Of a stretch of DNA of 64,000 nt, positions 20,300-54,076 are shown piece by piece. Origin of the DNA: Paragordius varius (lineage: Eukaryota; Animalia; Nematomorpha); the NCBI GenBank assembly GCA_964247055.1, contig OZ176055.1, positions 8,060,001 through 8,124,000 of the forward strand, given 5' to 3'. The position numbers and the translations under genes were made by a program. The notes under the pieces are model-generated. The model was not told the origin of the DNA. It saw only the letters and a list, made by a program, of their open reading frames with translations, and ran no database searches. Every line of letters begins with the position of its first letter. The first letter of the stretch is position 1.

Positions 20300-23200
20300 C
20301 TACAAAACAGTCCATCCACATTCATGTCCTGCGTTGTAAAGTTCCTTTAGTTTGGCCGTTAATTCGTGTGGGCTTAAGTTTTCAAATGATTCCATGTAAA
20401 GATTATATAGTTTTAGGGCATAAAAAGCATCCTCTACCGAATCATGAGTCTCTGATTGAATCACTTTTCCTAGCAATTACAAGTTTAAAAAAAGCTTAAA
20501 ATTAAAAATTAAGTATTGAATAAAAGTTGTTTAAAGAATTACTGTTAATTCGTAAATAATGTAAAAATTTATTACATATGATTAATTTTGTATCCAATAA
20601 CTCAATATCTTTAAGAATTAAATAAACGATATTTAAAATTGCTTTAAAATCTTAAAAATATAAAATTTTTCGATTTAAAATCTTGAAATATGAAAATAAA
20701 GGTGTAAATATAGGATCAAATATATACCAAAGTAATACCACACTAAAAATTTCAAAGATATGGACCGTTTATTTGGCAATCGAAATAGTTGAGAAGTATC
20801 AGCCATTTGTGTTTTAGGAACCTAGTTTATATTCAATAATTATAATATAAACAAAATATAATTAAATTTAGCTTAATTTTTTTGGTTGAGGCGTTTATAA
20901 AAATTTTATTTTCATTAATAATTTAATTAACCCAATATTTTAACATTTTATATGTCAAATATTATGTAGATAAAAAGAGCTAAATACCATAATATTGATA
21001 ATTTGGAAATCTTTGGTAAGGTTATGTCCAACAAACGTATAACCATGATCTATGAAATATCGTAATTGAACATAAATTTTTTTCAAGCTCACCGGATTTT
21101 TATCTGATAAATGATGTAAATCTCCCAATTGAATACCACTGTATTTAGTAACGTAATCCACAATTTGATCTTCTGTAGAATAAAAATAAAGATATATAAA
21201 AGTTTTTATTAAAACAGAATATATTTTTTTATTCAACTCAACATTAATAATTTATTTTGCAGATAAGTTTAATTACAACTTTTTCCAGAACCTTAATACA
21301 TTTCACAACTATGGTTTAAATTTTATTTTATCGAAATTAATTTTTTATTTTGCTATTAAATTAAAAATGGCCAATAAATTTTATCTTATTGTACATACAT
21401 AGATAAGGGATATGTTATCTCCTAAAATGGTAAAAATATTGAGTTTAAATAAAAAAGTTAGATATAAAACAACACACAAAATTAAAAAATCTAAAATCGC
21501 TTACCAGGAACTTTTATATACTGATCAAGGAAAGGAACACCCTCAAGCAATTGTTGAGCCAACACACTTTTTTGTTCTTTCAACAATTCCTCTTTTTTAT
21601 GGGAATTATCAATTCCATTTTTGCCATCATTCAATAAAAGAAGTTTTTCACGGACTGAAGGATAAAATCCGCGAAGACAGGTTATACGTGCCACACCTAA
21701 ATGACCTTGTTTAAGGGTGGTGTGAGACCCGTCCATGTTTAATATAGTTTCAGTCTTAACAAAAAATTGAAATTAAAAGGCAAATATTTTTTAAAAGACA
21801 ATATAATATTTTTCTCCTGATATTCCTTCCCTCCTCTATGAAATTATGATTTTGAAAATTTTACAACACAAAACAATGAAATATATGTAAAAAATCATAG
21901 TATAATCGTCTTTTAGTTTATACACTGGCCTTTCTTTATAATATTATATTTAATGTAAAGGATTATTTATATATAACTTTGATGATAAGAAATTCCAAAA
22001 TTTTAAAATACAAACGGAAAAGATAAAGTAAAGTTAAGATAAGGGGTAAAATACATTGAATACAAGGTTTTTAGGTAGAGTAATTAAATATTGACCTAAT
22101 ATTTTTCAATCCGTAATTTTTATTATAGGGTTGAGGAGAGACCCTTTACTATATGATTTAGAATCTCCTGTTTATATTGGTTATATACCATTTATAGTTC
22201 AAATTCACCCTTTAACAATTTAACCCATAAACAATTAAAATTCACCCTAAAAATAAAGTATGTGCTTTCGGACTAATATAACTCATTATTAATATGAAAT
22301 ATAGCTTTCTGGCATAGTTTATTATTTTTTTAATATTATATATAAAAATATAGGTAATTTTTGATCTTAAAAAGCATATAAATTATTTGAGGGTAAATTT
22401 GAGTTATTCGAGGGTGAATTTGAATTGTTCAAGTAAATTGTCAAAGGGTAAATTGGAATTGTAAATGGTATTTATAAAAAATTAATCTGAAAAAATGAGT
22501 TGCTTCACCACTTACCATTAAAATGTAATAAAAAATTACTTCAAGTACTATTTCAAACTTTACTGTTTATATACGAAATAAAATTAAAATTTGGCTCCAC
22601 CTGATTTAAAACAACGAATTCGGCATCGAGTGCTATAAAAAATTCATGGGGGTTAACATGTATTTCCTTGTCAAAATTTAAGGGTACAAATCCAAATTGG
22701 CTTTCCTTTGGATCTAAAAATAAAATTTAAATAAAGTAATTTTTAATAAAAAATATTGTTAAAATAATTACTACTAACTTTTTATAAATGTTTCCGTCAT
22801 CAAACTTTTTACAAGTTTTAAATCAATCGGATTCTCATTTTTGCTGTTTAACATGATTGTATCGAGATCTCTAGAGACGTAATAAAAAATTGAAGGTTTT
22901 TTCCAACAAGGTGAAAAATCTAAGGCATTTTCCTACGATATGTAATTTAAACAAAGTTATATAAAATATTTTTATATATAAAAAACTATTAAAAACGCGA
23001 ATTATAAAATAAAACCTGATTCAAGATAAAGACACAAAAATTGTTGAAAAGAACCCAATTTTTTTCATGAGGATATACGTTCCGTGATTCCAGCCACATG
23101 ATATCAACTAAATGGGATCCTATAAAAAGTTTTTTCGCATAAAAGTTATAAATCAATTTTCCGATTTAAAAAAATAAATAAAGTTTAACCTTTATGTCCT

Positions 23201-26200
23201 TCATCAATTTCTTCAATAATACCCAAGATTTCGTAATCCATACTGTTCATTTCATTTGCCTTTTTATTACGGTAAAAATTAAAATCAAAAAGAAGAATAA
23301 AAACTATAAAAAATTTTATAAGGAAAATAAGAAGTAATTATTATTGGAATATAATTACATGTTGTACCAATTAAAATCTATATTCCATTTTTTAGAAGAC
23401 AACTCAAAACGATATAAAATTAAGGATTAAGCCAGCACGCTTTATAAGTACGCAAAAATGCTCTAAAAAAACTTTAAAAAAATATAAAAAATGGTAACGA
23501 TTTAGAAGTAATATCATTCAAAATTGGGCTCAAAATACCTAAAAGTCAATAAAATTTACACAAGCTACGAAAATATTTGTATTAGAGACCCCTGGTTTAG
23601 GTGTTATTGCTGCGTTTATAAAATATGGGTCCTTTAGTTTTTACGTTTTGTCGTTATAAATTAAATTTTACTGTATTTTGATCATCCTTATCTATTCCAT
23701 TATTAAAGTTTATAGTTGTATCATTTGTTGCTATTTGTTCATTGATTTTAAGGGTAATTTCAATTAAATTTGCTTGACGTGCATTTAGACATGATTTTGA
23801 TATGGTTTCAGCATCAAATACATGCTTAAATTGTTGGATAGAACTCTCACATATATTGACAATCAAAATGTGAGGTAAATGAATAATATTCCTTTGAAAA
23901 TGCTAGAAAAGTACACAGTAAAAATTGAAATTATACGGACAAAATGTAAAAATATAAAGACAAAAATTTTTTTTCAAACGACAACCATACTTTTTTATAA
24001 ACCTTTAATTATCCTATAAAAAACATTTAATTACAATCTTAAAATACATAATTGATTATGTTACCAATTTACATTTCTATATTATACTTTCTAGTATAAA
24101 AGAATGAGTTATATTTTTAAAAATAAGATATGAAAAGTATGGTTAAAAAATATATTTCTTTATATTTTTACGTTTTGTCCGTATAATTTCAATTTTTATT
24201 AGATATAAAAAATAATCTTTAATAAGTTTTTTTTTTAAAAAAATATTTTTACCAATGATTGAAATTTTTGACAGTTTTCACACCAAGCCCGGGATACACT
24301 CCCGTGAGATATGGCAAAATTAATTAATTCAGCCATCGATGATGATTGATTGTCGCCATTTTTATTTTTGTCTTATTATAGAAACAAATAAATTATTTAT
24401 ATAAAAAAAATTCCCCTTATTTATTTGAAATTGGGAGATTTAGAAAAAAACACAGTAAAAATTGAATGTATATATACGGAGACAAAACGACAAGTATTTT
24501 CTTTTTTCAAAAGACACCCCATACCTTTTTAAACCTTGATTTTTCGTATGTAATTCATTAACTTACAATTATATAAAAATATATTTGATTGTGTTACCAA
24601 TTTACATCTCTATGTTTGATAAAAACAATAAATATGTAATAAATATTCAAATAAATCAAGTTAAAAAAAATATTTCTCTTAATATTTTTACGTTTTATCC
24701 ATACAAATTTAACTTTTACTGTATCTTTTAAATGACGGATGCAAATTCAAATATATATACCATTTACAGGTCAAATTTACCCTTAAACAATTCAAAATTC
24801 ACCCTCGAACAATTCAAATTCACCCTTGAAGAATTCAAATTCACCCTAAAAATAAATTATGTGTTTTCGAACTAATATAACTCATTATTAATGAGAAATA
24901 AATCTTTATGGCATAGTTTATTATTTTTCCAGTATTATTTAGATTTAAAACAAAATTTTTATTTTTTAAAAATAAATAAAAATATTGGGTAATTTTTAAT
25001 CTAAAAACATATATTTTATTTGAGGGTGAATTTGAATAGTTTAAGGGTGAATTTGAATTGTTTAAGGGTGAATTTGAATTGTTCAAGGGTGAATTTGAAT
25101 TGTTTAAGGGTGAATTTGAATTGTTCAAGGGTGAATTTGAATTGTAAATGGTATAATTTTCATCCTTTTCATTTATTTAATACATACAGAAACCATTATT
25201 TTCTCTAAAAAAACCAAAAAAAATTTTTTGTTAATAAATAAACTTTTCTTCGTGTATTAAGCAAAAATAAAATTATTTTTTTTACTAAAATTATCAAAGG
25301 TCTCCTTTCCCAGTGTAATAGTGTATCCATATTCTATAGTGGTTTGTTGTGTTTGACATTCACAACATTTGCTAACAACTTTAATAGCGTGTTGAAATAA
25401 TTCTCTAATGATAGATTCTGTTGACCTTAATATAGTGTTTTTGTAAAGAAATGGTGTTTTAATTCAGAAAAATTAAATATATAGTTTAGGTTAATTTAAA
25501 AAAATTTTGCTTTTTTCAAAAATAATTTATAATATATATACCCCATGGAGTTTAGTGAAAATTCTTTGTCCAAATACGGCAGTAAAAATCGATTGAAAGT
25601 TTGGATTAATCCATACAGCTAATATAAATCATAATATTTATTTGTTAAGTAATATAGAATCAAAATGTTATTTCTAATAGACATTATCATTAATTAAAAT
25701 CGTATAATTTTATTTTTAATGTAAATTGTCCTAATATAGTGTGAAATAAGCAACCACTAAAATGCATACTGTAATTGTTCATATATATATAAAACCAACA
25801 TGCAAATATACATTTTTTAATTGATGTTATTAACTCAAAAATAAATAAAAAAATTGGATAAAATTTACAAACATAATGGGGTTGATTGAATAAATGACTA
25901 TATATATATATATCAATAATTTAAGCATACAATCAAGATACTTGAAAATTAAAATAAGCTAAATAATCGCAAAAATGATCATGAATTTTGCTCAAAGAAA
26001 AAAGTTAATAAACTGGTAAAAATGGGTCAACTCTAAAAAACAGCACAAAAAGCTATTTAAATCTATATTGTGAATTTTACAAACCATAACTCACAGGGAT
26101 TTGGAAATGCTTATGGTTATTAATTGGAATTAAAACAACAACATAAATAGATTATTTTGTAAATTTTCCAAATTCAAGTACCATTTACAATCCAAATTCA

Positions 26201-29200
26201 CCCTCGAATTTCTCAAACAATTTAAATTAACCCTTGAACAATTCGCATTGACCCTAAAAACAAATTATGTGTTTTCGGACTAATATAACTCACCATTAAT
26301 ATAAATATATCTAAATGGCATAGTTTATTTTTTTCAGTATTTTTAAATTTCAAACAAAATTTTTAGATTTGTAATCTTAAAAAACACTTGATTTATTTTA
26401 GGGTGGATTTTCGAGAGTGAATTTGAATTGTTCAAGGGTGAAATTGAATTGTAAATGGTATATTAACAATAAATATTCCTCACAGGTGATTGGAAATGTT
26501 TATTACGGGTTAAATTAATTGGAAAATGGGTAAATTTAATTACTGTAAAGGATTAAAAAAATATTTTATTTAAGGTTTTTTTGTAAATTTTAAATAAAAT
26601 CGTTAAATTAATTTCGGGATAAAATTTATAAAATACCTTTTTATCCCATCGGGGAATGTCCATGGATAATGATAAGGCAGCAGTATTTTGCTTTTTCCAT
26701 TCTTCTGTCCCAGAATTATTATGATTATTACTATTCTATTGTTGGGTAACATAACATTGCAAATTTTACAGTATGCATTTTAATGGTTGGCAATTTGCAA
26801 CACAGTATAGTAGGGCAAATTTGCAACACAGGAGTGAGTGTATGGAAAAAATAATAAAATGTATATTGAATAAAGAATTATTTCCTTTCTTTTTTTCATA
26901 CACTAACTACTTGGTTACAAAATGCTCTATTATACTGTGTGAAATAAGCAACCATTAAAATGCATATTTTAACAGCGAAAAAAATTAAAAGATAACGTAG
27001 CCTTTATTAAAATGCATATTTTGAAATTCTCTAAAAAATTGGTAGCCCAATTATAAATAAAAAAACCAAAAAGTTTAATATGAAACTCTTACCCGCCCCC
27101 AAATTAATTTTTAGCATGTTTGTGTTACGCAAAATATTTTTAAAATGGAATCAAAAGCTAGGTTCGCGCTAATATATGAAATATTTGAACCCAGAATTTG
27201 GGTTTCAAAATTTATCATCAAATTTTTCCATTTGTTAATGAGCGCCCTCCAAAAAATATAATTCTCTAAATAAAAAAACTTAAATTACCGTATTTTGATG
27301 TTTAGTAGATGAACCTATTTTCTTTAAAGGTGATGAGGTTAGGCTTGAGGTATCAGAGCTGGTATCACCATAATTTCCACTAAAGGGAAAAATTAAATAT
27401 ATAAAAACATAAAAAGTAATATAAAATAATATACATTTTTTCGTGAAATAAACCATATTTTATATTATTCTTAATTTTATCTTATAAACTTGTAATAATG
27501 ACTAAAATTGTGAAATCTAAACTCGAATATGTTATTAATGTGCAACATATCTATTCCTTATTTCACAAATCGAAAAATAGGTTATCTTTTTCAAAAAATA
27601 TATAATTTTATTTATAAAAAATATTCCTTTTTTAAATTTTTTAACTTACTGTAACTTTGTGGAAAATTCATTTTGATCATCGTAGGATATGTTTTCATCA
27701 AGTATAAGACCAAATGCATGGGCAGTAGGAATATGTTTAAATGTTTTAACCAAATTTAATGGCTATAAAGGACAAAAATAAAAATTACGAAAAAAATTCA
27801 TAGTTAAAAATGATGCAATAAAACTATATTATTAATTATGGGAGTCTTTTTTAATTATTAACAGAGAAAAAATCTATATATTAAAAAAATAATTTTCATT
27901 TTTCAGCCTAAATTATAACGCATTCAGATTTATTCAAACATATATTTTAATTTTTTCTCTTTAATCAAATTAAATACCCATAAAAGGAATAATATGGCTC
28001 TTTACTAAAATTTAAAAGGCAAATCAATATTTATACAAAGTAATATAGGGTTTAAAACTTTCATGGAAAAATTGAGTCACCATTTTAAACCATTAGCCTG
28101 ACAAAATATGTAAAAAGTTAATTTTATGGAAATTTCTAAACTCAATACTTTGTGAAATGAAAAAATAATTTTGATGAATTAGTATGGAAATTACATATAT
28201 ATTTTAATATTTTTTACAAAAATATAATAAATTATATAATTTTGAGTTATATAATGTTATGTGTTGAAAATTCATTATTTGGGGTATTTCTATATCCCAG
28301 AGCCATTTGAAATTTGAATAGCTTAAAAAGTATTTAAAAGCCGAATTTAATAATATAGTTTCGTTAGTCTTTTGGAAACATTGTGAAAAAAATTTTTCTA
28401 ATGCAAAATTGTAAAAAATCCTCATCTCAAACATTTTTTTCCATAAATTTTTTTGAATCGCTAATGGAACAGGCACAAATGAATGTATTTTATGGTTAAA
28501 AAATGTAAACACTTAACTTTAAAAAGGTTTCAACTTGATATATTTTGATTTTAATATCAGCTGTTTGTTTCAATCGTGCTTTAGAGCTGTCCCAATTTTA
28601 TCTAGAAGTAATAAAACTGTAAAAATATAAGCTTTTTTATCTAATACATGACAACAATGTTTGATAATCAAATTTTAAGTAAAATAAAGTTCAATACTGT
28701 AATTTATTTACTAAATTAGGCTCTGGGATATAAAATTACCCCAAAATGTAAACTAGGGCAAAAAAGGGAAAAAGTATTGAAGTGTTAAAAGACATTTTCA
28801 TCACAAATTATATAGCTGTTTCCAAATACAAAAACCTTCAATATATACCATTTACAATTTAAGTTTACGCTCGAACAATTCAAATTCACCCTTAAATAAA
28901 TTATATGTTTTTTAAGATCAAATAATACCTATATTTTTATATATTTTTAAAATCAAAATAATACTAAATAATAAACTACGCCGTAAAGCTACATTTCAAA
29001 TTAATGGTGAGTATATTAGTTCGAAACACATAATTTATTTTTAGGGTAAATTTAAATTGTTCAAAAGTGAAATTGAATCGTTCAAGAGTAAATTTGAATT
29101 GTAATGGTATATTATATTTACAACAACAAAAATTATCAATCATCCTTTAGTTTCAATATTTTAAAATTCGCTTAATTTATTTATTTTGGGATAAAATTTA

Positions 29201-31703
29201 CCTGTACAGGTTCATTGTGGTAAAAAGCATCCATCATATGATATAAAAATGCCAATTCACAAGACAAACAAAATTCGCCCTCACATAAATGATTTAGTAT
29301 GTGGGAACGGAAAGGTTGAATAAAATATAGCATCTATCAATTAAAAAAAAGTAGTTTTTAATTATTTCATTCAGATGAATACAATTTTTTTATTATTTAA
29401 AACTTTTTTTTAATTTTGACACTCACTAAGCTAAAAAAAATAGGTTACTTGTTAAAAAAATATATTTGGAATTTCGCTTATAGCCCAAAATGATTTCGAA
29501 ATTTTATTATTTAATAAAAAAATTAATAATATAATTTCGTCAAATTATCAAAAAATGCAGTTTATATTTTAGTATTTTATAAATTAGTTTTTTTGATTAA
29601 AATTAAATTTACTTGAAGTACGGCATTTATATACGTGTTCTGTGAACCCGATAAAAGTGTAGGGAAATGTGTAGGATTATAATCATGGTAATTAATTTTA
29701 TCCTTGAAAGACGTATTCTTCAAATATTGCTAAATCCATATGTTATAATGTAAAAAATAAAAGTTATTTCACAAAATCCTAACTAATCGAAACATTTGAA
29801 AATATCCAGAAACCTAAAGTTTTAACTAAATTTTGTTCATTACGTAATATTTTTTTTTCAAAAAAAAATCGTATAAAATATTTTAGGAATAATAAAATAT
29901 ACCTTTCCATATATTTGAGGCACTAAAATCAATGATTCACTTGCATTTTTATTGTAATTATTATCAAAATTTTCAGGAGGATTATTATTGTCGAAGTGTA
30001 TATCCTCATTTGGAAACAAAGAAGTTTGACTATCAAAAAGTTTTGTTTAAAAAAAATAAATCAAAAAAATTTAATTTTTATCTGGTAATATGAAAAAAAA
30101 TTATCATACATTTCTTTAGCTGCTTTCAGGGGATCGTAATATTTTGGTGCGGAAGGATATATTTTGGCATATTCTGATATGTAACTTAGGTCTGTACATC
30201 TATGAAAATATAAATTATAACAAAATTTGTTCATGTTTGAATGAATCTTCAAAAAAAAGCATATATACCTGGAAAAAATATTTTTTTGTCTATTGATTAT
30301 TTAACATTCGAAAAACTATAAAAAAATGATACATTTAATTTTTGAAAAAAAATGTTAGTAAAATAATAATAGATAAATCCTGCTTTTATAGATTGCAAAT
30401 ATGCAAATTATAATTAAAAATATAATTAAATTTTTTAACTAATAAATTATTTAACTTTAATTGCTTATGAAGTAATTCAGGATCGTAGGGTAAACCATTA
30501 GGAATGTGTTGGGGTGAGGCTGGAACATACCCCACAAAATGCGACATTTTCATATTTTCTATCACATCAGCTGATATAGGGAGCACATTTCTGCACATCA
30601 TTAATATTATGCAATTATTAATTTAACATTTCTTAAATATTAATAAAAAACCTTTAATAAATGCAAAAATTCAAAAATTTAATATTTATTATTCGCAAAC
30701 ATTTTAATAAAATTATTTTTAAAAATGCTTTTTGGATTTTATCTCATAAAAGCAAATTTTAGTGTTTTATATATATATATATATATCCTTAAAAATATTT
30801 GACAAATGGTTATTTAAATTTTAATAATAAAAAACTATTATGTTACCCCTCCCGTTCCCACTTAATATATATCGATGATAAACTCTTTAACACAAATTGT
30901 CTTTTTAGGAGCTAATTTAATTGAATAATTTAACATATTTAAAGATTTATGGTAGACCGATCAAATTTTTGTATAAATTTCAATGGCCAATCTGAAGCTA
31001 GCGGGTAGGGATTTATTAATTTTTCCACGCAGTTAAATTCATTGCTATTCTCACCCAATGCTGTAATGAGAGGTTTCGTAAAATCATCAATATCTAATTA
31101 ACAGAACGTAATAAAATACCATTTAAAGTTCAAATTGACCTTAAACAATTCAAATATACCCTTGAATAATTCAAATTCACCCTTGAATAATTCAAATTCA
31201 CCCTTAAACAATTCAATATCACCCTTGAATAAATTATGTGATTATCAAGATAAAAAATACCTTTATTTTTTATATTTAAAAATGAAATTTCGTTTAAAAT
31301 TAACCTAATAATGAAAAAATAAGAAACTATGCCATAAGAATATATTTCTTATTAATGATGAGTTATATTAGCCCGAAAACACATAATTTATTTTTATGAT
31401 GTATTAAATTCAAGGGTGTATTTGAATTGTAAATGGTATATATTAAATATATAAATTATAAATTAAATTTTTACTTTGACGTTTACCCGAAGCTTTTACT
31501 GAATCTTAACTTATGCCATAAAATATTTTTGGCTAGAATATGATTATTTAAACCTGCAAATTCGAAGAAAAAAAATATTTTATTTTTTTATTAATGACAC
31601 CAAAATTTAATAAAAATAGACATCTGATTTTGAAATCAAAAGTTAACAAAAATTTGCTGTCAAAATGTAATATATATCATTTTAGTGTATCTTAATTGTA
31701 TTT

Positions 31704-31748
<45 letters not shown>

Positions 31749-34189
31749 TTGTTTGCTACCCATTTTAGCGATTAATAAAATATGCGAAATATTTGGTATT
31801 GAGATGACATTTTTTAAAATGCTTACATTTTTAAATAGGGGTAATGAGCCTAAAATGCCAAATAAACATCTATAAATTTGACTCAATATCATAGTAAGTT
31901 ATTTATATTTAAAATTGCTCAGGGATAAAAAAAACTTAACAAAAGGTAATAAAGTATTAGATTATTGACATATATAGAATTGAAAATTAAAAATAATATC
32001 AATTAAACAATTTCAAATAAATAAAAGTAAAAACACTATTTATAAAAAAATAAAATGTGTGGATAACTTAATGTGGGTAAATCTGTAGCAAGGTCCGGAA
32101 ATTCGGTTGGAAAACTGAGAATATTGAAATGCATTTCATTCGTTTCAGTCATGACTGCGTTTTTATCAGTTCGATAGATTTGAACTCCACCTATCAATAC
32201 GAAAAAAAAGTTAAAAAAATTAAATAATTATTACAATATTACAAAGTTATCAATTTTATAAATTTCTACAAAACGAAAAGATATAATAAAAAATGAAAGG
32301 TACGAAAAATACGGTTATAGTATAAAATATATTTGGCTTTTGATTTTACGTTTTTGTCTTTAAAATTAAATTTTTTTAGAAATATAAAAATTATATTATC
32401 ATACCTAACGCATCGCCCAATGCAAAAAATTTATTGTTTCCAGCAACATCCATACAAACAATTTGACCATGCTGAAAATTATAAATTATGCTACTGAGAT
32501 GTTGATTTGCTTGAACATCAAACAGTTGATAACCACCATCCTAGGGCCCCAAAAAATATTTCTTTCAGATATTAATAAAAATGAATTATATATTTTGAAT
32601 TTTTTTTGGAATTTTAATACAAAGGATTATATTTTATTTTAAGTTTTTTGTTAAAATATTGTAATAAATATAGTATCTATATATGTACCAATACATTCTG
32701 TTTTCGTTTTCTTAATACAGTTAAAATTTATTAATTCGAAACTCAAATAAACAATTATATAGCTAAAATTTCATAGAAAATATTTTATTTATTATATATC
32801 TTTATATATATAATAATTTAAGGAATAAAAAGTTTAATATAACTTTAACGATTTCCCATTAATTTAATCAAAGATTTTTAACTTAAAGGAGACCTTACTA
32901 ATTTATTGTTTATTTTATTTATAAAATCTAGATGACCAGCTAAACTACAATAATATTTGAATTAAGAAAACATTAAGGATTAATTAAAATAAAAAATCAA
33001 TACATTTGTAATGGCTATCATACGTTCAGTGTACGTTTTTATGAATCGAACAGCGCATGGCATCAAATTAAGTTGGATTGGGGTTAAACTTTGTTCACTT
33101 CGCACATCATATTTCTTGATAAATCTCTCCGATAAAATATTGTCGTTTCTAAGAGATTTTTACCAAAAATAAACTATTAAATGAAGTTTTTTTGGCAATA
33201 AAATGTTATGTTACAAAAACAGTCATATATATTTAGAGACCAAAAAATTATTTTATAAAGAAAACCATAATTTTTCAACTGTAATTTTTTAATATATATT
33301 ATCGTTTTGGTTTAAATAAGGTATAGCTTTTAAATGGGCAACATATGAAAAAAGTTAATTGGTTATTTTTAAAAAAATTGTCTCTTAGCTTTTACGTTTT
33401 GTCTTTATAATGTTAATTTTTATTTTAAAATATATTTAGTAATAATTGTAAAAGTAAACCTTTTAAAAGCACCACAACATATTATAATATAGTGGGAGAT
33501 ATCAATATCGACAATATAATTTTGTTTTGAATCAAATTCCCGTAATCGTTTTAATTGAAAGTCTCTCAAACAAATCTAAAAAGCAATAATAAAGGCAAAA
33601 AATACTTTTCCACCATGTGCAGTGGCTATATGTAAATCCGTTGCTTTTATTAATTCACAGCATGTGTATTCTGATATTTTTTCCTAACAAAAATTAAAAT
33701 GAAATTTAAAACTTCGCGTTTTATGTACTTTATATTTGAAATATTTAACACGACAAACTTTGGTTTGGATCCACCAATAACAATTTGATAATCCGTAATG
33801 TTAATAAAACAAAACGCTTCAAATATATTGGAAAGACTATTATGGATTATCAAATAAAAACTCATAATTGGTTTTTGGAAGACCGCCTCTTGTATATATT
33901 CTGATGGATGTTTTGCTCAAAATAAACAAAAACAATGGATTCATACAGATAGCTAATACAGGAAAATCCTTAAAAGTTTGAAATGATGTGTATCTGATAA
34001 AGGTTGGCCCGTAAAATGAACTTACATGTCCCTAAAATGAATTTAAAATAAAAATACATTCAAATTTCCCGTCCATAATAAATCCTGATATCGATCAAAC
34101 TTCAAGCAAGTTATTGGATAAGTTTCCACATCTTGAACATATTGTAAAAATTCGTATTCAGGAAAATTATTATCGTAAAATCTGATCAT
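20300..34189 (-). CDS. PAN2: PAN2 poly(A)-specific ribonuclease catalytic subunit (WD40 + pseudo-USP + DEDD nuclease), ~30 exons
   Basis: Exons: 34058-34189, 33862-34031, 33713-33836, 33606-33683, 33460-33575, 33004-33148, 32405-32540, 32068-32190, (31500-31553 possible), 30958-31093, 30456-30590, 30110-30199, 29903-30029, 29613-29729, 29202-29333, 27650-27762, 27289-27379, 26637-26735, 25542-25618, 25286-25425, 24253-24371, 23672-23902, [23260-23670 unresolved], 23190-23259, 23016-23119, 22779-22932, 22601-22713, 21505-21754, 20988-21172, 20728-20821, 20300-20469. Motifs: PLASDWP, HLCEGEFCLSCEL, AWCENCQ, IALDAEFV, VARITCLRG, FVGHNLTKDF, ISLKFLVWYYF, THDSVEDA; the four DEDD acidic residues are intact. 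The start codon is less certain than the internal exons. Confidence 0.92.
22186..22470. mobile_element. MITE family A (TACCATTTAC...GTAAATGGTA, 21-bp subterminal repeats)
   Basis: Matches the other six copies; lies in a PAN2 intron. Confidence 0.85.
23916..24200. mobile_element. MITE family B
   Basis: CAGTAAAAATTGAAATTATACGGACAAAA and its inverse; PAN2 intron. Confidence 0.75.
24452..24721. mobile_element. MITE family B
   Basis: Same TIRs; PAN2 intron. Confidence 0.7.
24758..25153. mobile_element. MITE family A, longest copy (six 21-bp GGGTGAATTTGAATTGTTYAA units in the right arm)
   Basis: TA-flanked TIRs; source of the spurious NNSNSPL-repeat ORF. Confidence 0.9.
26179..26460. mobile_element. 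MITE family A
   Basis: Same TIRs and core; in a PAN2 intron. Confidence 0.85.
28846..29109. mobile_element. MITE family A (core inverted)
   Basis: Same TIRs; core in reverse orientation. Confidence 0.8.
31117..31438. mobile_element. MITE family A (core inverted)
   Basis: Same TIRs; several 21-bp units in the left arm. Confidence 0.8.
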
Positions 34190-34287
34190 TATTCCCCTTT
34201 TTGTATCACATGTTTCACATTGCTAAAATTTAAATATTTGAAATTTTAAATTAAATAGAGCATTTTAATGTCTATTCATTGAGATCA

Positions 34288-34325: not shown

Positions 34326-35333
34326 GCTTAAAACTACCCAAAAATATCGTAAATGAACTTTAATGAATGATTAATATGTTATAATTGTCGGATTAAAAAG
34401 ATATTAACGCCGAACTCAATGTAATTTTTTGGCAAAATTCAAATGACATATTCAGTTTTGCCTATTTATTTTTTTTTAATAAAAATCTATTTACGTTTAC
34501 GGTTTTATCTAAAAATATGAATGATGGTGTTTACTTTAAAGATTTCTTAGTATTTTACGGAATCTAATCAAAAGATATGTGATATATAAATATTTAACTC
34601 TATCGAACATTATTTTTGTCAAATAATATGGATAGAATTTTGAAAAACCTATCATAATAATTATGTTTTTTTATATTTTGGTTTCATTCCAATTTAATTA
34701 CGAGGATGGCCTGTTGGACACTTTTGATTTAGATATTAAATATAATATGTTTAGTCGATATAAAAAAATTAATATTAATATAGTGTCTCCAATTAAATTA
34801 TTTTATGGATATATAGGCCTATCAAAAAATGGCTCAAATATTTAACTTCAAATCAATCCAAATAAAAAATATTAACTTGCTTAAAGTGTAAAATCCAAAT
34901 TAACATTTTTGTTATATTATGACCTTGCCTGATCGTTTTTTACCTAGGTTTCAAGTATTTATAACCATTCAAATAAATATATATCGGGTGTTTTATTACA
35001 TTCTATAAAATTGGTCATCAGCTCATGACGTATTTTGATATTTTTTAGGACACAGTTTTAATATTTTTTCAAAATCATATTATACCTATTCAGGCAACGA
35101 AATCTCTAATCTACCTTGCTTATATATCTCTAGGGGTGGCCAACACGCATTTTTCCAAATTTCTGTAGCCCGTGAGTAATTTTAAATAAAAAATTTTACG
35201 AAGTCCAAATATTATTTTTTTAAACATATTTTCTGAATAAATCCTCCCGAACTCGACAGTGAACTAGCCAAAATGGTAAAATAATTAGTAGTTTTTAATG
35301 TATTATGTTTAAAATTTATATAATATTAGTCAA

Positions 35334-37443: not shown

Positions 37444-39676
<2,233 letters not shown>

Positions 39677-39934
39677 GGCGCCAAATATACCGAATCAAAA
39701 AGAGCATTTTAGTTGTAACTTTGATTTGCAAGAAAGAAACTTTTATACTGTTTTGCAATATTTTTTCGAAGTCACACCTTATCTAACACTTAAACTCATT
39801 ATCTTTTAACCTTTCTGTGGTTTATTGAATAATATTGTCTTAATTAAAAAGTTGTAAAAATCTATTGATATAAAGGGTGTTTTTCCAATTTTATATCATT
39901 TGTGTAATTAACACTTGGATGCAACACACTCATT

Positions 39935-40497: not shown

Positions 40498-40568
40498 AAA
40501 AGCCTTTATATCTACAGTTTTATCATTTCTACATCTACCCGAAATAATTTATAATTTTATTGATTATA

Positions 40569-40790
40569 CAATCATAGCCTTTATTTTATCAAAAATTTAT
40601 TTTTTTGTTAAATGGGTATAAATATTTGGTAAAGAATGGAAAAACGTGAGCTCTATGGTAATTCTTATACTTTTTTGATGAATATATATTTTTAATATCA
40701 TAAGCTCTTGTTCTTCCATTATTTAATAAATATATATACCCATTTAATGAAAAAAAATAAATTTTTGATAAAATAAAGGATACATGACGG
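40569..40790. mobile_element. MITE family C, second copy
   Basis: Colinear with 14781-15006. Confidence 0.85.
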
Positions 40791-40849
40791 TAGTTAGGAT
40801 CATGTGGAAAATGAATAAATTACATGTGAATATTTAAAAATTAGCATAT

Positions 40850-41900: not shown

Positions 41901-42167
41901 TGTTCTGAGATACTTTTTTATATGTAAAGATGTGATTTTTTTTGGATATGAATTATGTTTTCCGATTAACATATTTTCTTAATTAAATCACATCTCACTT
42001 CTGTTCGTTTGATTTTAGGATTTACGCTGCCAATAGCAATGTGTGCGTGCTTTACGGAGAAAATAATTTAAGTTATTATTGTTTATTATGATATGAAAAT
42101 TGTCGCATATATAATACTTGTTAACTTTTATTGGATACCAATGTAGCTATTTTCAATTAGGCTAACG

Positions 42168-44193: not shown

Positions 44194-44468
44194 GGCTAAC
44201 GTATAGTTAGTTTTGTTCAATCGTTTTGATCATCATGTGCATATCGAAATCCATTTATTACAGGATGTGCAATTATATTAAATTAATTTATAGACAAAGA
44301 AAGAAATTATGAATTGCTTCTTCTGTCATAAAAACCTTTGGTATTTATAATTTGTTTCATTCTAAAGTCGAATAATAATATACGATTTTTATTAATCCAT
44401 TTAACGAACATATAATATGGCTTTTAATATATTTCATAAGTGCAAAGTATTAAAATATATTTATTCTA

Positions 44469-46052
44469 TCAAAGATAATATATTAGCATGGTTCCTGCTA
44501 AAGCAAAGAAAAACCCAACTATCATAGGGGACTGAAAATGTATATATGTTTGCAAATATCCGGCCATTATGGGGCAAATCATTCGTGAAAAAGATGACAC
44601 ACTTTGAGAATAACCTATCAATTCACCCATGTTGATGTGATGACTATCAACCTGTGATTAAAAAATTAGATTCATATCCAAAATTTAAATTAGATATCTT
44701 TGCTTAACTTATCCTAAAATTTTACATTTTTTAAGGTGAATGTGATGTTAAATGTATCCAATAAGTTACGGCACCAGGAATTTGTAATACTATTTATCCA
44801 AATGCACAGGCATATAAATACTGCTAAATTTATAAATGTCCAGTCGTTATTAAAAGGTGCAGTTAGTATGATCCCAGTGATGAGCATTGAAACGGCGTAA
44901 AACATGCCACATATTTGATACAAAGTTTTGGTGGTCGAAATGTTAGAAAATAGATGGGTTTCGGACCTAAAATAAGCCATTAATTAGCCAAATTACATAT
45001 TTTTTAAATAATTAATATAATCCGTCCCTACTTTTTGAATCTTTGGAAATACAAAGTAAACAGTATTGCCAAAATGGAAGCAATAAACGAAGACATCGCT
45101 GTGCTAGATAAAATAAAGGCAATCCAATTTGAGTTAAATAACTTGGAATGTTCTAGATGTCTACATGCGTATACAACTATAAATCAAATAAAAACACCTG
45201 TACAGATCATGACGAAATATAAGAATAGCTGAAACCATAAAAAATCTCACCAACATAAGTTTTTGAAAACCTTGATTAAACCGCAAATGTTGATAAAAGT
45301 TATTTAAGTTAAACAGAGGTTTTATTGCAACCTTTTCTCGGTTTTTATGAGTCAATTTGTGATTATTATTTATTGGGATTGATTTGGACATCTGATATAC
45401 TATGCCTAAATATTATGTTAACAAATATTTACTGATATTCAGCAAATAACCGCATAAAACAAGGTATAAAATTTTGTCATATGAATCCATATACGAGGTT
45501 ATATAAGGGCTTATCACAAATCCAAGGTTAGAAATGCAATTTAAAATTCCTATTTGCTTTATAGATTCCTGACATAACAAAACAAATTACCATGGCAGTG
45601 ATTTGATTAAGCGAAATAATAGTTTTGAATATTGTTCTAGTATGCTTAAAACAACCTACATATAATATTAATTGGATTAGAAAAGCGATTTTAATTTGAT
45701 GTAACTACCTGCAATAAACCGAGACAAAATTAAAATATAGATATTATCCTGTAACAAAAGTGCATAAGATACAAATGAGCCAAAAATACACAACCCTAGA
45801 AGTAAATAAGGGTTGGTCTGACTATAATGACCCTAAACATTAACCTTTCATACAATTAAAGGGGATAAAATTATTTGTAAAACACTGTACAATGCCCACA
45901 AATAGCCAATTCCAACATTTGATATGCCTTTATCGCTCAATAATTTATTTAAATACGGAACTATCAAACCGATATTTATATGATCCTATAGAATATTTAA
46001 AATTAAATACAATAAAGATTATCGGGTAAAAAAAGGTCTGGCAATTTCGCAT
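44469..46052 (-). CDS. MFSD9: Major facilitator superfamily transporter, MFSD9-like, 419 aa, 9 exons
   Basis: Exons: 46011-46052, 45854-45985, 45709-45832, 45591-45655, 45433-45568, 45198-45405, 45032-45160, 44726-44966, 44469-44651 (1260 nt). Segments colinear with MFSD9 as I recall it: LSRFIAGCFKHT, IGILNCISNLGFVISP, LMLVRFFM, GELIGYSQSVSSFSRMICPIMAGYLQ. The MFS call is firm; the ortholog name is less so. Confidence 0.8.
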
Positions 46053-46339
46053 ATGCAATATATGAAAATATGCAGATCAGCATAGGTTAACAAAATAACT
46101 AATATATAAAACACAAAAATTGGTTTCACATTATTTCTTAAGGATTTCTTTTTGTAACAGAATATTTTATTATAGTTGTTAAAAGATAAAATTTTAAAAA
46201 TTGTGATCTGCGCCTTAGGCTTTTAAAAAAATTTAATTGTCCTTTTTTACATAAAACAAAATTTGTTAGCAAACGAGCCTTATATTAAAAGTGTGTAACT
46301 GTTCAGTAGTTTTGTCTTATAGAAAATGTGCTATTAAAA

Positions 46340-47640: not shown

Positions 47641-47642
47641 AA

Positions 47643-49255
47643 TCTATATAATTATAAAAATGGAGAGTTATGGCTCTGTGATCCTTCGGTAAACCGGTAG
47701 ACCCATTCAAATCCAAATATCGAAAAATATAATCATTAATGAATGCCCCGACAATAGCTTCGCCTTTTTTCGAATTAGGTTTCCAGTTCGGGCCCGCCCC
47801 GTGTAAAAAACGGTTTTTCTGAAAACAGAAGTACACACAAATGTGTCTTTGAGATGATTTTCCCCAAAAAGTGTTGGACCATTTGATTTCAAATATGATT
47901 TTTTTTACTTATATCGATTGCGCCGAACATATTGGGCTCGCTTTTTTAATTTAGGCCCACTATTTACCCGCTCCTCGCATAAAATGCCATTTTTTCAAAA
48001 AAATTATGGCCACAAAATAATTTTTTGAATCTATTTTTCGCCCAAAGTATGACCGTAAAAATTCAAAAGAATCCAGATATTCCCTATTGAAAGGCAGCTC
48101 TTTGATGATAGCTGCTAAGTAAGGAAATACTCGCTAAAAACTGACCCGTCATATCAAAATAACGCTCCTTTGGGGCTAGATTTCAGAAAACCTATCAGGC
48201 CATATGAGTGTAATAGCTGCTTAAAATATTAACCGTAACAAGGCAAAAATTTAAGTGGTGCGGTTTTTTAAATTTAGCCGTTAATTAGGCCCTTCACGCC
48301 CTGAAAAATGCGCCACCATAAAATGATTTTTAATTTTGAGGCAATTTTTCCAAAAACTAATGAGAGCATATCGAATCAATCATGATTCCAGGTATTCTCC
48401 GTAAAAAGGCAAAAATTTAAATCAAGCGCTTTTTTGTATCAGCGTCTGGGTAGGGAGGTACCCGCCTAAAACTGCCCAACCATATCAAAATTGCGTGTTT
48501 ACTAGTTAATTTTCAGAAAACTTATCAGGCCACATAAGCTTTATAAGGGCCTGAAATAATACCCATAAAAAGGCATAATTTAAGTCGAACGGTTTTTTTT
48601 AATTAGCGGTTAAATAGGCCCTTTACACCCTAAAAAATGCGCTATCATTGAACTATTATTTAGTTTTAAAGCCATTCTTCCATAAACTATTTATAACATA
48701 TGGAATGAATGATGATTCCAGGTATTCCAGTATAAGGGCAAAAAATATTATCGACCGTCTTTTTTATATTGGCCTCAGGGTAGGGGCTACCCGTCAACAA
48801 CTCTATCACTATATCGATACAGCATGCCTTTGGAGCCAAATTTCAAAATACTTATGAGACTATGTGAGTTCAATAAGGGCCTTAAATATTATTTACCCCT
48901 TAAAAAAACAAATATTTTAGTGTAGGAGGTTAGTTCAATGAGTCGCTAAGAAAAGTTTTACGCCCTGAAAAATTCGCCACCATAGAAATTTATTTCTAAA
49001 CAATATTTCCAAGACTTATCGGAACATATGGACAGGATAATTCCAATATTCCGTATAAGACAAAAATTTTGCCCGACGCTCTTTTATACCTGCCTCTGGG
49101 TAAGAAGCTACCCGCCAAAAACTGCGCTACTATATAGAAATTGCGTTGTTTTGGAACTAATTTAAAGAAAACTTATGCCATATGAGCTCATTTAAAGTTC
49201 GAAATATTATCCGGAATAGATAAAAATTAAGGTCAGGTCTTTTTTTATTAGCCAT
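47643..49255 (+). mobile_element. Non-autonomous Helitron, copy 2 (3'-truncated)
   Basis: 5' A|TCTATATAATTATAAAAATGG, and the first ~450 bp closely match copy 1. Longer repeat array; no hairpin or CTAG end. Confidence 0.85.
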
Positions 49256-49319
49256 CCGCAAATACAATAATTACCTGTTTCACTCATATCAAAAAATTTA
49301 GAGACAAACAAAAAGTGTA

Positions 49320-50265
49320 CATTAACAAACACTAAATAAAATTTTTTCGAGTTTCTTCATTTTCTTATTTAACAGTAAATTATAATTCCACCAAAGAATT
49401 TTTAGTAAATTGATTTTTTTATGATTACAATGTTTTTCTTTGTAAATAAACAACAAATGCCCTATTATAATATATCATTCGAAAGAGTAATTAAAATTCT
49501 TTGAAGAGCTTATATTTATGTTTTTCATCGATAGTTAATAAGGAAGCGATAAACCCACGAAACGATAGGGTTTTTTCTAATTAATATATTTTAAAAAATA
49601 ATGGATAAAAATAGCTCAAACTTTGTGTGGATGACAATGAATGTCTACAAAATATAACACAAAATTTTTTTTGATTAAAACTCTTATTTATTGCTTTTAT
49701 GCCATTCAAAACAGCCATTTTTATTTTTTTAAAAAACAATTAACCTATATTCATTATTATCTTTTGAAGGCTTATAATCTTTAAATTTTAACGACTAGTA
49801 ATATAGTATAAGGTACTCTTGATTTTTTATAACCACCATGTAATAAATTTACAGTTATAACTATGCATTTTAGTTTGCTTTAAGAAAAATAATTACGCTA
49901 ATGATAAATTTAATTGAAAAAGCTAACCAGATTTTTTTTACTAATGTAAACCAAATATATATTAATAATAAATGATTTTTAAATTAGTATGTCTGGAAAA
50001 TTTTGACCATATAAACACAAATAACTTTAACATTTTAAATAACTAATTACCATTCGAAAGCTTCAGTCTTTTGCACTATTTTAATAATATAAAATACATG
50101 GCTCTATATCTAAAACTTTAAATTTCGAAAATTTCAAGTCTAATGTTAATTCGGGGCCAGGTGTTGAACCATTTTTTTTCAGATATATTATTTATGTACT
50201 TTAATGAAATAAATTTTAAATTTACAAGAATGGCACTTAAAAAAGTCAAAATTTGTTGCCTAGTG
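49320..50265. mobile_element. Second copy of the 18673-19750 element
   Basis: Shared internal blocks (TATAATTCCACC, GAAAGAGTAAT, CATCGATAGTTAAT, AAAAATAGCTC, CATGGCTCTATATCTAAAACT) and the right end GTTGCCTAGTG|TA. Confidence 0.7.
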
Positions 50266-50320
50266 TAATCTAAAATTAACATAGATGAAATGGTACAAAA
50301 TTTATTATATTCATAAATAA

Positions 50321-50632
50321 TTACATTTTGAAATTAAAATAGGATTGGTCAAAATAATTAATCTTGATGATACCATCTTCACCACCAGTACTAAAACTAA
50401 AATTTATATAAAAAATTGTTAAATATATTAATGATAAAAATTCAAAGTTTTGCATTTATAATACGAAATTAATATCTAACGAAATTGGAATAAATTTAAT
50501 AACATAAAAATGTCTGACTAAAAAACATTTGGCTAAAATTAACAATGTAAGTTACAACAAATATTTAAAAGCGCAACATATACGATTTGTTGTCAATGTA
50601 AAAAGAGCAATTTTCTAGCAAATAAATTTTAT

Positions 50633-50697
<65 letters not shown>

Positions 50698-53266
50698 CTT
50701 TACCTCAAATTATCATATCAATGTATATAATAAAAAACTAGCCCTTTAAACAACTTTATTATAATGAACAAAACTATGGACATTGCAAAAAAACTCATAA
50801 AAATGTAAAACTCATACAAAGATTTATATATATACAGTAAAATCAAAAATAAATAGTAAAAATACCTTTTTTATACATATCTTAAGAAAATTTCTCAATA
50901 GAAAAACAGACATTTTCGAAATAATACTTTCATATTCTTTCACCACTACATAATTTTTTCTCTCATGTAATATAATGTCTCTAAACCACTTATTTTTAGC
51001 ATTTATAAATTCCTTTTTTTTGCTCATTTTTATTTTAAAATTTTTCCTTCCTACCTTTTCCCATCCGGATGAAAAACAAGCGAATTGATTGGGCCAAAAT
51101 GGCCAGGGACCCGGGCAAATTCCTCCTCGTATACTAAATGGTAAAAACGGCTTTCAAAACCACCTTTATCTCCACTGCGTGTAACTTGACGCACATCTTC
51201 ACCACCTCCCAAAGCAACCTTTTAGTAAATAATTGATTAGTTTTCACGTATAATAATTCAAAATTATATAAAGGTAAAACAAAATAGAGAAAAGACAGAC
51301 TATTAGTATATTGGTAGGAAAAAAACAATATTGTATATTAACTTTGTTAATTTTCTAAAACGATGTAGGATAAAAATAAAAGGTTTCAAAAATTTAGGTT
51401 TATCCATAAAACACATTTTAATCTATATGTATTTTATCTTTACGAAATTAATGCAGTAAACTATACATATAAAGAAAAATTAAAAAAATACGATTGTGTA
51501 AAAGAAAAGGAGAAAAAACTTTTATAATCCATTATATATTATATTTAAAAATAAATTTTATACTATTTCAAATATTTATGATTTTATAAAGATATAATTT
51601 CACTAAAATTTAAAAAAATTAACTTTATAATATTATATTTTTACATGTTGATATATGGGTGAAATGGAGGCCGAATTGATTTTACGACTGGCTTTGTACG
51701 TTTTCATACATTGTAGAGTATCGAAATCATACAACTATATATGTAAGATGATATTGTAATGGTAATGAACGGATTGGTTATGTTTTGTAGTAACAGTTGT
51801 TAAAATCCGTAATATAATGATAAAGGATAATTAAATAGAATTAAATGAAATTATAAATAGAAATTATAAAAGATATGTGAAACCCTCCGTCAATAGTAAT
51901 CGCAGACTAGTTTCGTGCTTGTTAGCACTAATCAGTACGACACAACTATTTGACTTGGGATTTCACATATCGATTTCGTATATATATCCAACTTTGCAAT
52001 TTTGGTATAAATATATATGCAAGAGATAAAATATTGTTATTTGATAGTTAATAAAATGTATTTTTATAAAATTATAAATAAAAATACATAGTTTTTTTTT
52101 AAAATAGATGGAAAATGAATATATTTTAATAAAATTTAATAATCCGATAATTTTGTTATAAAATATAATTTAAAATTTAATTACCTTAGCGGTAAAATCA
52201 GAAGAAGCCGTAACAAAATAAATTTGATCTGCGGATGCTTGAATATCGTTAATCTCTTGTTTGTGTTCAGAGGCAAAATTGATGCATAATTCGTTCTATT
52301 TTTTTTTAAAAAAATTAGAAAGATGTATTTAGAAGAAAAAAATGATAGACTATCATGTAATCCAAAACTGGAAAACTGGCATGGATTTTTATTTTATCGC
52401 GCATTTCAAACCCTTTTTTCAAAATTTATCGTCATTTTTTGAAAATAATATATGTAAAGTTTTATGAGCAGAGTAAAAAATTGTATTTTTGATTTTTTTA
52501 CGATTACTTAAAACAGCAAACAATTAATATAAAGGAAAGTATATTCAAGATTTAGAGTTTATATTTAAGGTCCTCCCAAATAAAGAATGCTTTTCAATTA
52601 AAGTTATTACATTAATATAAAATTGTACTTTTAAATCCCATTGATTAATGCTACCATCGGAATGGGTAGTTATTATATATTCATCCAAAGGACCCCAAAG
52701 TGCATTCGTAACGTTCGGTTTCCCTGTCATATCAAAACTCGTTTGAGAATCTAACGAATCTTTTTTTCCAAATTCATTCAAGTTAATTACGTAGACTTGG
52801 GATGGTCGGTCTTTTTGTTGTTGAGTCGTCAATAACAAACGACTACCATCTAAATTAAAATTGACGGAACGCACAGTTGATTGAAAATCCATTTTAGATA
52901 TTGCTTTGCCTACATACATATTTTTATAGTATTATTCAAATGATTGTTTTATTTGGAGATGTCAAAATAATGATATGACTAAAAACCTAATTCAGCATCC
53001 CATAAAATAGATGTTTTGTCAGCCGAACCAGTAATAATTTGAGTGGTGTCCCATTTAACATCAAAACCGTAGACAGCTCCATTATGACCATTGTATGTTC
53101 CTAATCTTTCGCCATTCAAAGAAAACCAAACACATGGAAAAGTATCCTTAGCGATTGAAAACAATAAATCACCTTCCAAATTGTATTTAATTTTAGTTAT
53201 AGGTTTTTCATGACCGTGACAATTAATAGTTTTCTAATGGAAATTAAATCAAATTTTGCATACCAT
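50321..53266 (-). CDS. EIF3I: Eukaryotic translation initiation factor 3 subunit I (WD40), 323 aa, 7 exons
   Basis: Exons: 53264-53266 (ATG only), 52987-53233, 52629-52909, 52185-52295, 51645-51734, 51055-51218, 50321-50396 (972 nt). Motifs: [79 protein letters not shown]. Confidence 0.96.
50638..50696. repeat. (TA)n microsatellite, ~29 units; shorter ones at ~72-105, ~31707-31740 and ~37596-37620
   Basis: Directly visible. Confidence 0.95.
51872..51971 (-). ncRNA. Candidate structured intronic RNA (100-nt hairpin in eIF3i intron 4)
   Basis: The sense-strand arms pair over ~38 bp, including G-U pairs that work only on the transcribed strand. Confidence 0.35.
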
Positions 53267-53378
53267 GCTTACTGGGATAGAAAGCCTCACCGAAAAAAAT
53301 TAAAATAATGGTATAAATAAAATTTATTTTATTACACTACCAATAAATATTTATACAAAAGAATTTATTAAATGATAA

Positions 53379-54076
53379 TTATTTTTTTGGTGCATCCGGT
53401 TGATTGTCTGGATGGGCACGAATAAAACATTCAAGTTCATTTAAATTCTTAGATATTCTTAATATGATGGGAAAATTATTCATGTCCACTTCAAAACTAT
53501 AATAATTTAGACATCAAATATACCGTATTGCATTGTAAACTTGGGGAACTAATACACAATCTGCTAAGGTTACCTGATCCTCGAAGCAAAACTTTTTAGA
53601 TGTTTTGGCCAACATTTTTTCCAGTGCTAAAGTAAAATCGGAAAATACCTGTAAAACCCATTTCGATCCAATATTTAGCCCATTCCGGCTTATTAACATA
53701 CTTAAGAACGCGTAAATTTTGAATTGGTTGTATATCACATGCAATAACATCCATAATTGCTCGAACTTGAGCTTTCGAATTGATATCGCTCGGAAACATA
53801 GGAGGTTTCGGATATTTTTCTTCCAAATACTCAAGGATGGCCAACGATTGGTTGAGAACAAAATCACCCATTTGTAATACGGGAACCATACCCTCCGGGT
53901 TTAATTTCTGATAAACCGGTTGATACTAAACTATATACTAAAATAAAAACTTGTTCACCGCCTTCTTTAATTAAATTTATGGGAATATATTCATATTCTA
54001 TACCCTTATATTCAAGGGCACATCGGACTCTATAAGAACAAGAGCTGCGAAAATATGAATAAAGTTTAGGCAACAT
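53379..54076 (-). CDS. GSTZ1: Glutathione S-transferase zeta / maleylacetoacetate isomerase, 207 aa, 4 exons
   Basis: Exons: 53951-54076, 53649-53925, 53524-53626, 53379-53496 (624 nt). Zeta motif [14 protein letters not shown], plus [57 protein letters not shown]. Confidence 0.96.

Follow-up and report, generated by a model that had tools for sequence, protein, structure and literature searches.

Why should the shortest introns of an animal genome gather at the 5' ends of its genes? The question is raised by a 64,000-nucleotide stretch of the genome of the hairworm Paragordius varius (contig OZ176055.1, positions 8,060,001 to 8,124,000; here called the window; 27% G+C), in which genes such as PAN2 and TYMS open with introns of 22 to 30 nt and continue with introns of hundreds of nucleotides. 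The original prediction for this stretch placed all introns of up to 31 nt inside the first 646 nt after the ATG, had no intron over 100 nt start closer to it than 533 nt, described the long introns as filled with transposable elements (TEs), and proposed that insertion and expansion are kept out of a protected promoter-proximal zone of ~650 nt. Our analysis of reading frames and homology places these micro-introns, in adjacent clusters, in roughly the first 0.6-0.9 kb of genes and none beyond, and indicates that they are probably GT-AG spliceosomal introns of the ordinary kind that form an ultra-short length class of their own. As for the cause, we favour, with slightly less than even confidence, a reading in which the 5' region would be a zone permitting micro-introns and not a zone protected from insertion, their splicing being limited to the vicinity of the 5' end.

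Six window genes contained 57 introns, of which 18 were no longer than 31 nt and 39 were longer (maximum 1439 nt). Seventeen of the short introns lay within 650 nt of the ATG and one beyond, compared with 5 within and 34 beyond for those above 31 nt (Fisher p = 3e-9), and length rose with distance from the ATG (Spearman rho 0.62). The predicted confinement of all introns of this size to the first 646 nt thus held for 17 of 18, the exception being a probable 19-nt intron at 857 nt in an MFSD9-like gene. The earliest intron over 100 nt began 533 nt from the ATG, and no micro-intron was located 3' of an intron over 100 nt. For PAN2, TYMS, eIF3i and a divergent serpin, the chance of micro-introns filling exactly the first positions was 3e-8. 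Micro-introns also follow one another directly, with four in a row in PAN2, three each in TYMS and GSTZ1, and three to four in a Rab-like gene. The six gene models are as follows.

20303-34189, minus strand: PAN2 gene, 30 exons, ATG at 34189, from spliced alignment to Gordionus PAN2
33576-34057, minus strand: PAN2 micro-intron cluster, at 34057-34032 (26 nt), 33861-33837 (25 nt), 33712-33684 (29 nt) and 33605-33576 (30 nt)
33149-33459, minus strand: earliest long intron of PAN2 (311 nt), which begins 730 nt away from the ATG
37444-39676, minus strand: TYMS gene, from three-frame reading plus a codon-usage/splice-site model
39656-39635 (22 nt), 39506-39484 (23 nt) and 39303-39277 (27 nt), minus strand: TYMS micro-introns
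39105-38597 (509 nt), 38495-38260 (236 nt), 38184-37884 (301 nt) and 37811-37582 (230 nt), minus strand: TYMS long introns
37884-38184, minus strand: TYMS intron 6, with a miniature inverted-repeat transposable element (MITE) of ~275 nt, bearing terminal inverted repeats, inside an otherwise 26-nt GT...CAG intron
53379-54076, minus strand: GSTZ1 gene, introns at 53950-53926 (25 nt), 53648-53627 (22 nt) and 53523-53497 (27 nt)
50327-53266, minus strand: eIF3i gene, 3' end approximate
53263-53234 (30 nt), 52986-52910 (77 nt), 52628-52296 (333 nt), 52184-51735 (450 nt), 51644-51219 (426 nt) and 51054-50397 (658 nt), minus strand: eIF3i introns
44469-46052, minus strand: MFS transporter (MFSD9-like) gene, built solely from open-reading-frame chaining and splice-site scores
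14199-16666, plus strand: divergent serpin gene, introns at 14289-14319 (31 nt), 14434-14459 (26 nt), 14732-15462 (731 nt) and 15781-16428 (648 nt)

The predicted intron lengths of PAN2, TYMS, eIF3i and GSTZ1 were reproduced by spliced alignment, three-frame reading and Pfam exon coordinates. PAN2 was modelled on the minus strand between 20200 and 34400 with our own protein-to-genome spliced aligner, which admitted GT-AG introns of at least 18 nt in all three phases. The query was the RefSeq PAN2 of the hairworm Gordionus sp. m RMFG-2023, the best full-length match of the window gene (overall identity moderate). From 5' to 3', the introns obtained by this alignment measured 26, 25, 29, 30, 311, 463, 214, 720, 260, 367, 271, 80, 173, 279 and 1439 nt, continuing to a last intron of 258 nt; the exons covering residues ~595-840 had weak alignment support. 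All four PAN2 micro-introns lay no more than 584 nt from the ATG, and a scan of the PAN2 exons for unaligned in-frame runs of at least 18 nt that could conceal further ones found none. The spliced TYMS model yields a protein that is continuous through the conserved thymidylate synthase motifs. Successive eIF3i exons match contiguous segments of the Pfam EIF3I profile (3-84, 82-182, 181-213, 214-243 and 244-298), and the 30-nt intron of this gene lies directly 3' of the ATG.

The lengths predicted for the MFSD9-like gene and the serpin are plausible, although they lack homology support. A Pfam search gave no usable support for the MFSD9-like model, whose introns measured 25, 21, 53, 22 and 27 nt, then 19 nt (45195-45177) or 37 nt (45213-45177), then 65 and 74 nt. 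For the sixth intron, the 19-nt solution (donor GTTTTT) is more likely than the predicted 37-nt one (donor GTCATG), its donor being much better. The serpin gene lies outside the 20300-54076 interval to which the original prediction referred; a minus-strand serpin at 41-43.4 kb was sought and none was found there, the gene being located on the plus strand at 14.2-16.7 kb. It is very divergent, with a weak Pfam Serpin match in the last exon only (E = 1.6e-5). Its 731- and 648-nt introns are clear, and the 31- and 26-nt introns follow solely from frame logic, as a serpin-like N-terminal segment can be read only with a change of frame. Genome-wide, serpin loci number more than 25 (C7:2.73-3.03 Mb, C3:11.36 Mb and C10:0.3-0.64 Mb), including a tandem array on C7, and most of them have a long first exon (Pfam ~17-174) without a micro-intron, followed by introns of ~70-300 nt.

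The micro-introns collected from the window and elsewhere (n = 39) ranged from 19 to 33 nt, with a mode at 22-23 nt, a sharp lower limit and an A+T content of 81%. All carried GT...AG ends, with GT in 39/39, A or T at +3 in 38/39 and TAG in 34/39; at ~80% A+T, a polypyrimidine tract is not separable from background. Nine of the 39 were divisible by three in length, a class in which in-frame, stop-free introns are under-detected by the method. Beyond the micro-introns (19-33 nt), the next length group was 50-99 nt, followed by introns of 100 nt to 3 kb.

Evidence from outside the window came from an exon-by-exon Pfam search of the whole genome (110.6 Mb in 44 contigs) for members of the CCT, HSP70, Ras-type GTPase, SNF2 and ALDH families. 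Intron length was taken as the gap between consecutive matches, corrected by profile coordinates, and was equal to or within ~15 nt of the GT-AG solution wherever the DNA was read. Most of the junctions counted had Pfam-anchored exons on both sides; an ab initio codon-usage/splice-site finder supplied a minority, all 5' micro-introns, which were accepted only if the flanking protein was clearly conserved, as this finder recovers 5' micro-introns but also invents small exons within long introns and upstream of true starts. For ALDH, 14 of the 70 candidates were scored and gave five junctions.

The relation between length and position extended to these families. Micro-introns occupied 25 of 65 junctions at estimated coding-sequence (CDS) positions below 650, compared with 0/32 at or beyond 650 (CCT, HSP70 and ALDH; minimum 67 nt; p = 1e-5), or 0/55 when 23 SNF2-domain junctions were included (SNF2 minimum 178 nt; p = 2e-8). 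Among junctions below CDS 650 that lay 3' of a long intron, none of 11 was a micro-intron (p = 0.005). All micro-introns sampled outside the window (19-33 nt) fell at estimated CDS positions below ~550. They were present in many Ras-type GTPase genes (e.g., 23 nt in a RhoA-like gene, and 22/22/22 and 23/22/26 nt in Rab-like genes), in BiP (23 and 28 nt) and in two CCT genes (25/26 and 23/23 nt).

Short introns located farther downstream formed a second class, with lengths of 65-99 nt in PAN2 and of 67, 69 and 79 nt elsewhere, and none below 50 nt. Downstream introns without detectable repeats did not drop below ~50-65 nt. Some genes carried a first intron of 53-79 nt in place of a micro-intron (79 nt in HSC70, 53 nt in a Cdc42-like gene, and 61 and 71/79 nt in CCT genes). 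The predicted rule that introns over 100 nt start at least 533 nt from the ATG was true of the window but false genome-wide, as introns of 0.23-3 kb began at CDS ~130-330 in many CCT and Ras-type genes. Examples are CCT introns of 607 nt at CDS ~264, 589 nt at ~328 and 1195 nt at ~270, and Ras-type introns of 1081 nt at CDS ~138, 2976 nt at ~180 and 812 nt at ~300.

In Rab11-like, RhoA-like and Ral-like GTPases, insertions of 6-8 residues encoded by A/T-rich codons interrupt conserved sequence, and we know of no insertions at these sites in the GTPases of relatives. The probable explanation is micro-introns of ~24 nt that keep the frame, contain no stop codon and so are translated in six-frame searches.

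The same polarity was seen in the PAN2 gene of Gordionus (assembly GCA_954871325.2; 26.93% G+C, similar to the window), at a locus that reproduces the RefSeq protein exactly. Its introns measured 49, 53, 44, 160, 104, 421, 354, 180, 913 and 2472 nt, with others following. The 26-, 25-, 29- and 30-nt introns of the window gene correspond to those of 49, 53, 44 and 160 nt at matching positions, so that the arrangement is shared with a larger minimum. We treated these introns as orthologous on the strength of exon lengths, which match closely:

Gordionus, first seven PAN2 exons: 150, 170, 136, 84, 119, 145 and 142 nt
Window genome, first seven PAN2 exons: 132, 170, 124, 78, 116, 145 and 136 nt

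This comparison suggests that intron polarity is older than the split of the two hairworms and that the minimum length went on shrinking in the window genome. Introns are not mentioned in either the Gordionus genome preprint or the comparative hairworm preprint.

From the pattern itself, which is established by these counts, we infer a positional limit on splicing. The splicing machinery would be able to handle introns this short only near the 5' end of the nascent transcript, with intron definition there being assisted either by the cap-binding complex or by RNA polymerase II that is still close to the promoter. Shrinkage to this lower limit would then be possible only near the 5' end; further along the pre-mRNA, the workable minimum would be ~50-85 nt, and anywhere in the gene introns would also lengthen by insertion of MITEs or other TEs and by other gains. 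The nuclear cap-binding complex enhances cap-proximal splicing, and the 5'-most intron is accordingly handled differently from later introns. To our knowledge, this effect is established for one normal-sized cap-proximal intron, and clusters of 20-30-nt introns are not known to depend on it. Four observations count against simple insertion exclusion and led us to favour a positional limit: there are two length floors, no micro-intron follows a long intron, long introns occur inside the 5' zone, and 5' introns are at the species minimum in both hairworms. Among the causes raised by the original prediction, an intron-definition mode tied to the 5' end therefore fits best, and it has likewise been suggested for flatworm microintrons (PMC6530080). 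A more specific proposal, that hairworms, and convergently flatworms, have a position-gated splicing mode linked either to the cap or to RNA polymerase II in early elongation, by which 19-33-nt introns can be excised only within ~0.6-0.9 kb of the transcript start, is speculative and on balance doubtful; if true, the length class of an intron would record the extent of that 5' zone.

Several points weigh against a positional splicing limit. Splicing was deduced from reading frames and homology, and all four sequencing runs aligned to the window are DNA, with contigs running through the introns. Positions were measured from the ATG or along the CDS, not from the transcription start site (TSS), and the genome sample comprises five protein families with CDS positions estimated from Pfam profile coordinates. 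Six-frame searches cannot detect micro-introns that keep the frame and lack stop codons, and the downstream absence of micro-introns may consequently be overstated; PAN2 and BiP were inspected directly for hidden in-frame micro-introns, and none was found in these two genes. The putative 19-nt intron of the MFSD9-like gene lies 857 nt from its ATG. Finally, TYMS intron 6, a former micro-intron at CDS 675 that was enlarged by a MITE, fits the rival view in which long introns are expanded short ones.

According to that rival view, all introns drift towards the minimum length, and insertions or expansions are excluded or purged within the first 3-4 nucleosomes after the promoter, leaving tiny introns only at the 5' end. 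TYMS intron 6 (301 nt) speaks for this view: at least 40 dispersed genomic copies, at 67-81% identity, map exactly to the intron, whose make-up of 26 nt plus a 275-nt MITE shows that insertion does convert micro-introns into long introns, and we keep expansion alive as a contributor on this account. Dispersed repeats also occur in several long PAN2 introns, and eIF3i contains a high-copy stretch at ~51600-52000 within an intron according to read-contig depth, the rest of the gene being at single-copy depth. The description of the long introns as TE-filled holds for these cases but not for the other three long TYMS introns or the other long eIF3i introns, for which no copies were found elsewhere in the genome; most of the 200-500-nt introns of these two genes are thus without detectable copies. 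Tandem repeats do not account for the long introns. A search of 55 long introns for a micro-intron plus one inverted-repeat element gave no signal above shuffled controls, in a test so insensitive that it missed TYMS intron 6 as well.

The six window genes, whose introns over 100 nt all begin 533 nt or more from the ATG, are further in keeping with a protected zone, as is the conservation of short 5' introns in Gordionus PAN2. The early long introns of many CCT and Ras-type genes, beginning at CDS ~130-330, speak against it: since long introns occur inside the 5' zone, the zone is not generally protected, and is instead the sole place where micro-introns occur in our sample. Repeat-free downstream introns, moreover, bottom out at ~50-85 nt and not at ~23 nt, a floor that TE exclusion alone does not explain. 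A chromatin boundary marked by methylation finds no support either. The ratio of observed to expected CpG was 0.94 (5') vs 0.82 (3') in window genes, 0.80 vs 0.95 in CCT/HSP70 exons, 0.95 in introns and 1.02 in the whole window; with 5' exons, 3' exons and introns all at ~0.8-1.0, no boundary of CpG depletion separates the 5' zone from the gene body. Taken together, we regard a protected zone as rather unlikely to be the explanation.

Mutational bias would dispense with a special splicing mode, as small transcription-associated deletions near the promoter would erode 5' introns faster than others. The sharp lower limit of the micro-introns is compatible with such erosion, as is the finding that the 5' introns of the PAN2 orthologues are at each species' own minimum. 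Erosion leaves unexplained, however, the second discrete floor at 50-85 nt and the persistence of first introns of 53-79 nt in HSC70, the Cdc42-like gene and two CCT genes, and we consider it improbable. That the pattern is an artefact of hand-built models and a small sample, with micro-introns noticed only where exons are conserved, gains something from the MFSD9 and serpin models, from the over-splitting of long introns by the ab initio finder and from the hiding of in-frame micro-introns, but is largely refuted and very improbable, as the alignment of PAN2 to a full-length orthologue permitted 18-nt introns throughout and found micro-introns only at the 5' end, and the conserved downstream exons of CCT, HSP70, SNF2 and ALDH gave 55 junctions, none below 67 nt.

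Micro-introns of 19-33 nt are shorter than usual animal introns. Bradnam and Korf reportedly found in 2008 that first introns are longest as a general eukaryotic rule; the hairworm pattern has position-dependent length in common with that rule, with the sign reversed for the 5'-most introns. Dicyemid introns measure ~26 nt. Those of Paramecium measure ~25 nt (PMC5014332). Both share with the hairworm micro-introns a length of ~20-30 nt and GT-AG ends, but nearly all of their introns are tiny at any position, whereas tiny introns in the hairworm are a 5'-restricted minority beside others of 50 nt to several kb (39 of the 57 window introns exceed 31 nt).

The closest parallels are flatworms, in which 5'-clustered microintrons have been published for Opisthorchis felineus and other trematodes, Schistosoma mansoni, Gyrodactylus salaris and Echinococcus (PMC6530080, PMC4040987, PMC3254664). 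In O. felineus, intron length peaks at 37 and 90 bp, and a preference for intron definition has been suggested (Ershov et al. 2019, PMC6530080). Gyrodactylus has modes of ~32 and 58 bp, the short mode dominating intron positions 1-2 (Hahn et al. 2014, PMC4040987); negative correlations between intron length and position are cited in the same work. As in the hairworm genome, flatworm introns show two short length modes and a long tail, with the shortest class favouring the 5' ends of genes, close to the TSS, and long repeat-bearing introns downstream, and the microintrons are adjacent to one another, have canonical splice sites and are missed by gene finders. The short mode differs (22-23 nt in the hairworm vs 32-37 nt in flatworms), and the 5' restriction appears near-absolute in our sample, where introns are known from DNA sequence, as opposed to a preference in the flatworm papers.

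Because those papers describe the same layout, the hairworm represents a second animal lineage and not a new kind of architecture, the layout known from flatworms taking a more extreme form in it. The description of the pattern as a reversal of the usual animal one is fair, with the qualification that flatworms provide a precedent. As hairworms belong to a different phylum, the 5'-microintron pattern either had a separate origin or dates back much further than has been thought. No mechanism has been established for the flatworm microintrons, and the sharper contrast in the hairworm (~23 nt vs at least 50 nt) makes it testable whether position in the transcript sets the minimum spliceable intron size. 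In practical terms, standard gene finders, and RNA aligners run at their default minimum intron length, will misannotate many gene 5' ends in such genomes.

Further observations concern the window at large. A 638-codon uninterrupted open frame at 8900-10813 on the plus strand encodes a homeodomain protein and is without an intron in its first 1.9 kb; 5' micro-introns are therefore not present in every gene. Six PAN2 introns between 22381 and 31232 share a dispersed repeat with a 21-bp minisatellite (unit TTTAAGGGTGAATTTGAATTG and variants), which also occurs near 55.5 kb. Between PAN2 and TYMS, at 35300-36973 on the minus strand, lies a fragment of a retroelement without long terminal repeats (non-LTR), with RVT_1, a PHD finger and a 442-aa open frame. 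Many genomic copies of this element were found at 90-98% identity, so that the family looks recently active. An Rfam search of the window returned no matches. The CpG ratio of the window (~1.0; 0.8-0.95 in exons) bears no trace of historical germline CpG methylation.

Two genes share an exact 15-mer on the gene strand, TAAAATGCTCTWTTT, which precedes the ATG of PAN2 by 64-78 nt (34253-34267, minus strand) and that of TYMS by 21-35 nt (39697-39711, minus strand). The window holds no further exact match, and ~0.01 would be expected by chance on a rough estimate. The 15-mer may be a core-promoter or TSS motif, and if so, the 5' untranslated regions (UTRs) of PAN2 and TYMS are short. At 53266-53379 on the minus strand, where GSTZ1 and eIF3i have the same orientation, only 113 nt separate the GSTZ1 stop from the eIF3i ATG that follows it. 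A T-rich stretch closing with CCCAG, resembling a splice acceptor, ends 5 nt upstream of that ATG. The two genes may form an operon-like pair, or eIF3i may carry a trans-splice or 5' UTR acceptor. Across the window genes other than eIF3i, no consistent acceptor-like site was found just 5' of the start codons, so that spliced-leader trans-splicing has nothing to support it. Across 48200-54199, a few percent of sites, in introns and at synonymous-looking exon positions, differ between the assembly and DNA contigs of a second sample that bears the same organism label, and sequence diversity appears to be high.

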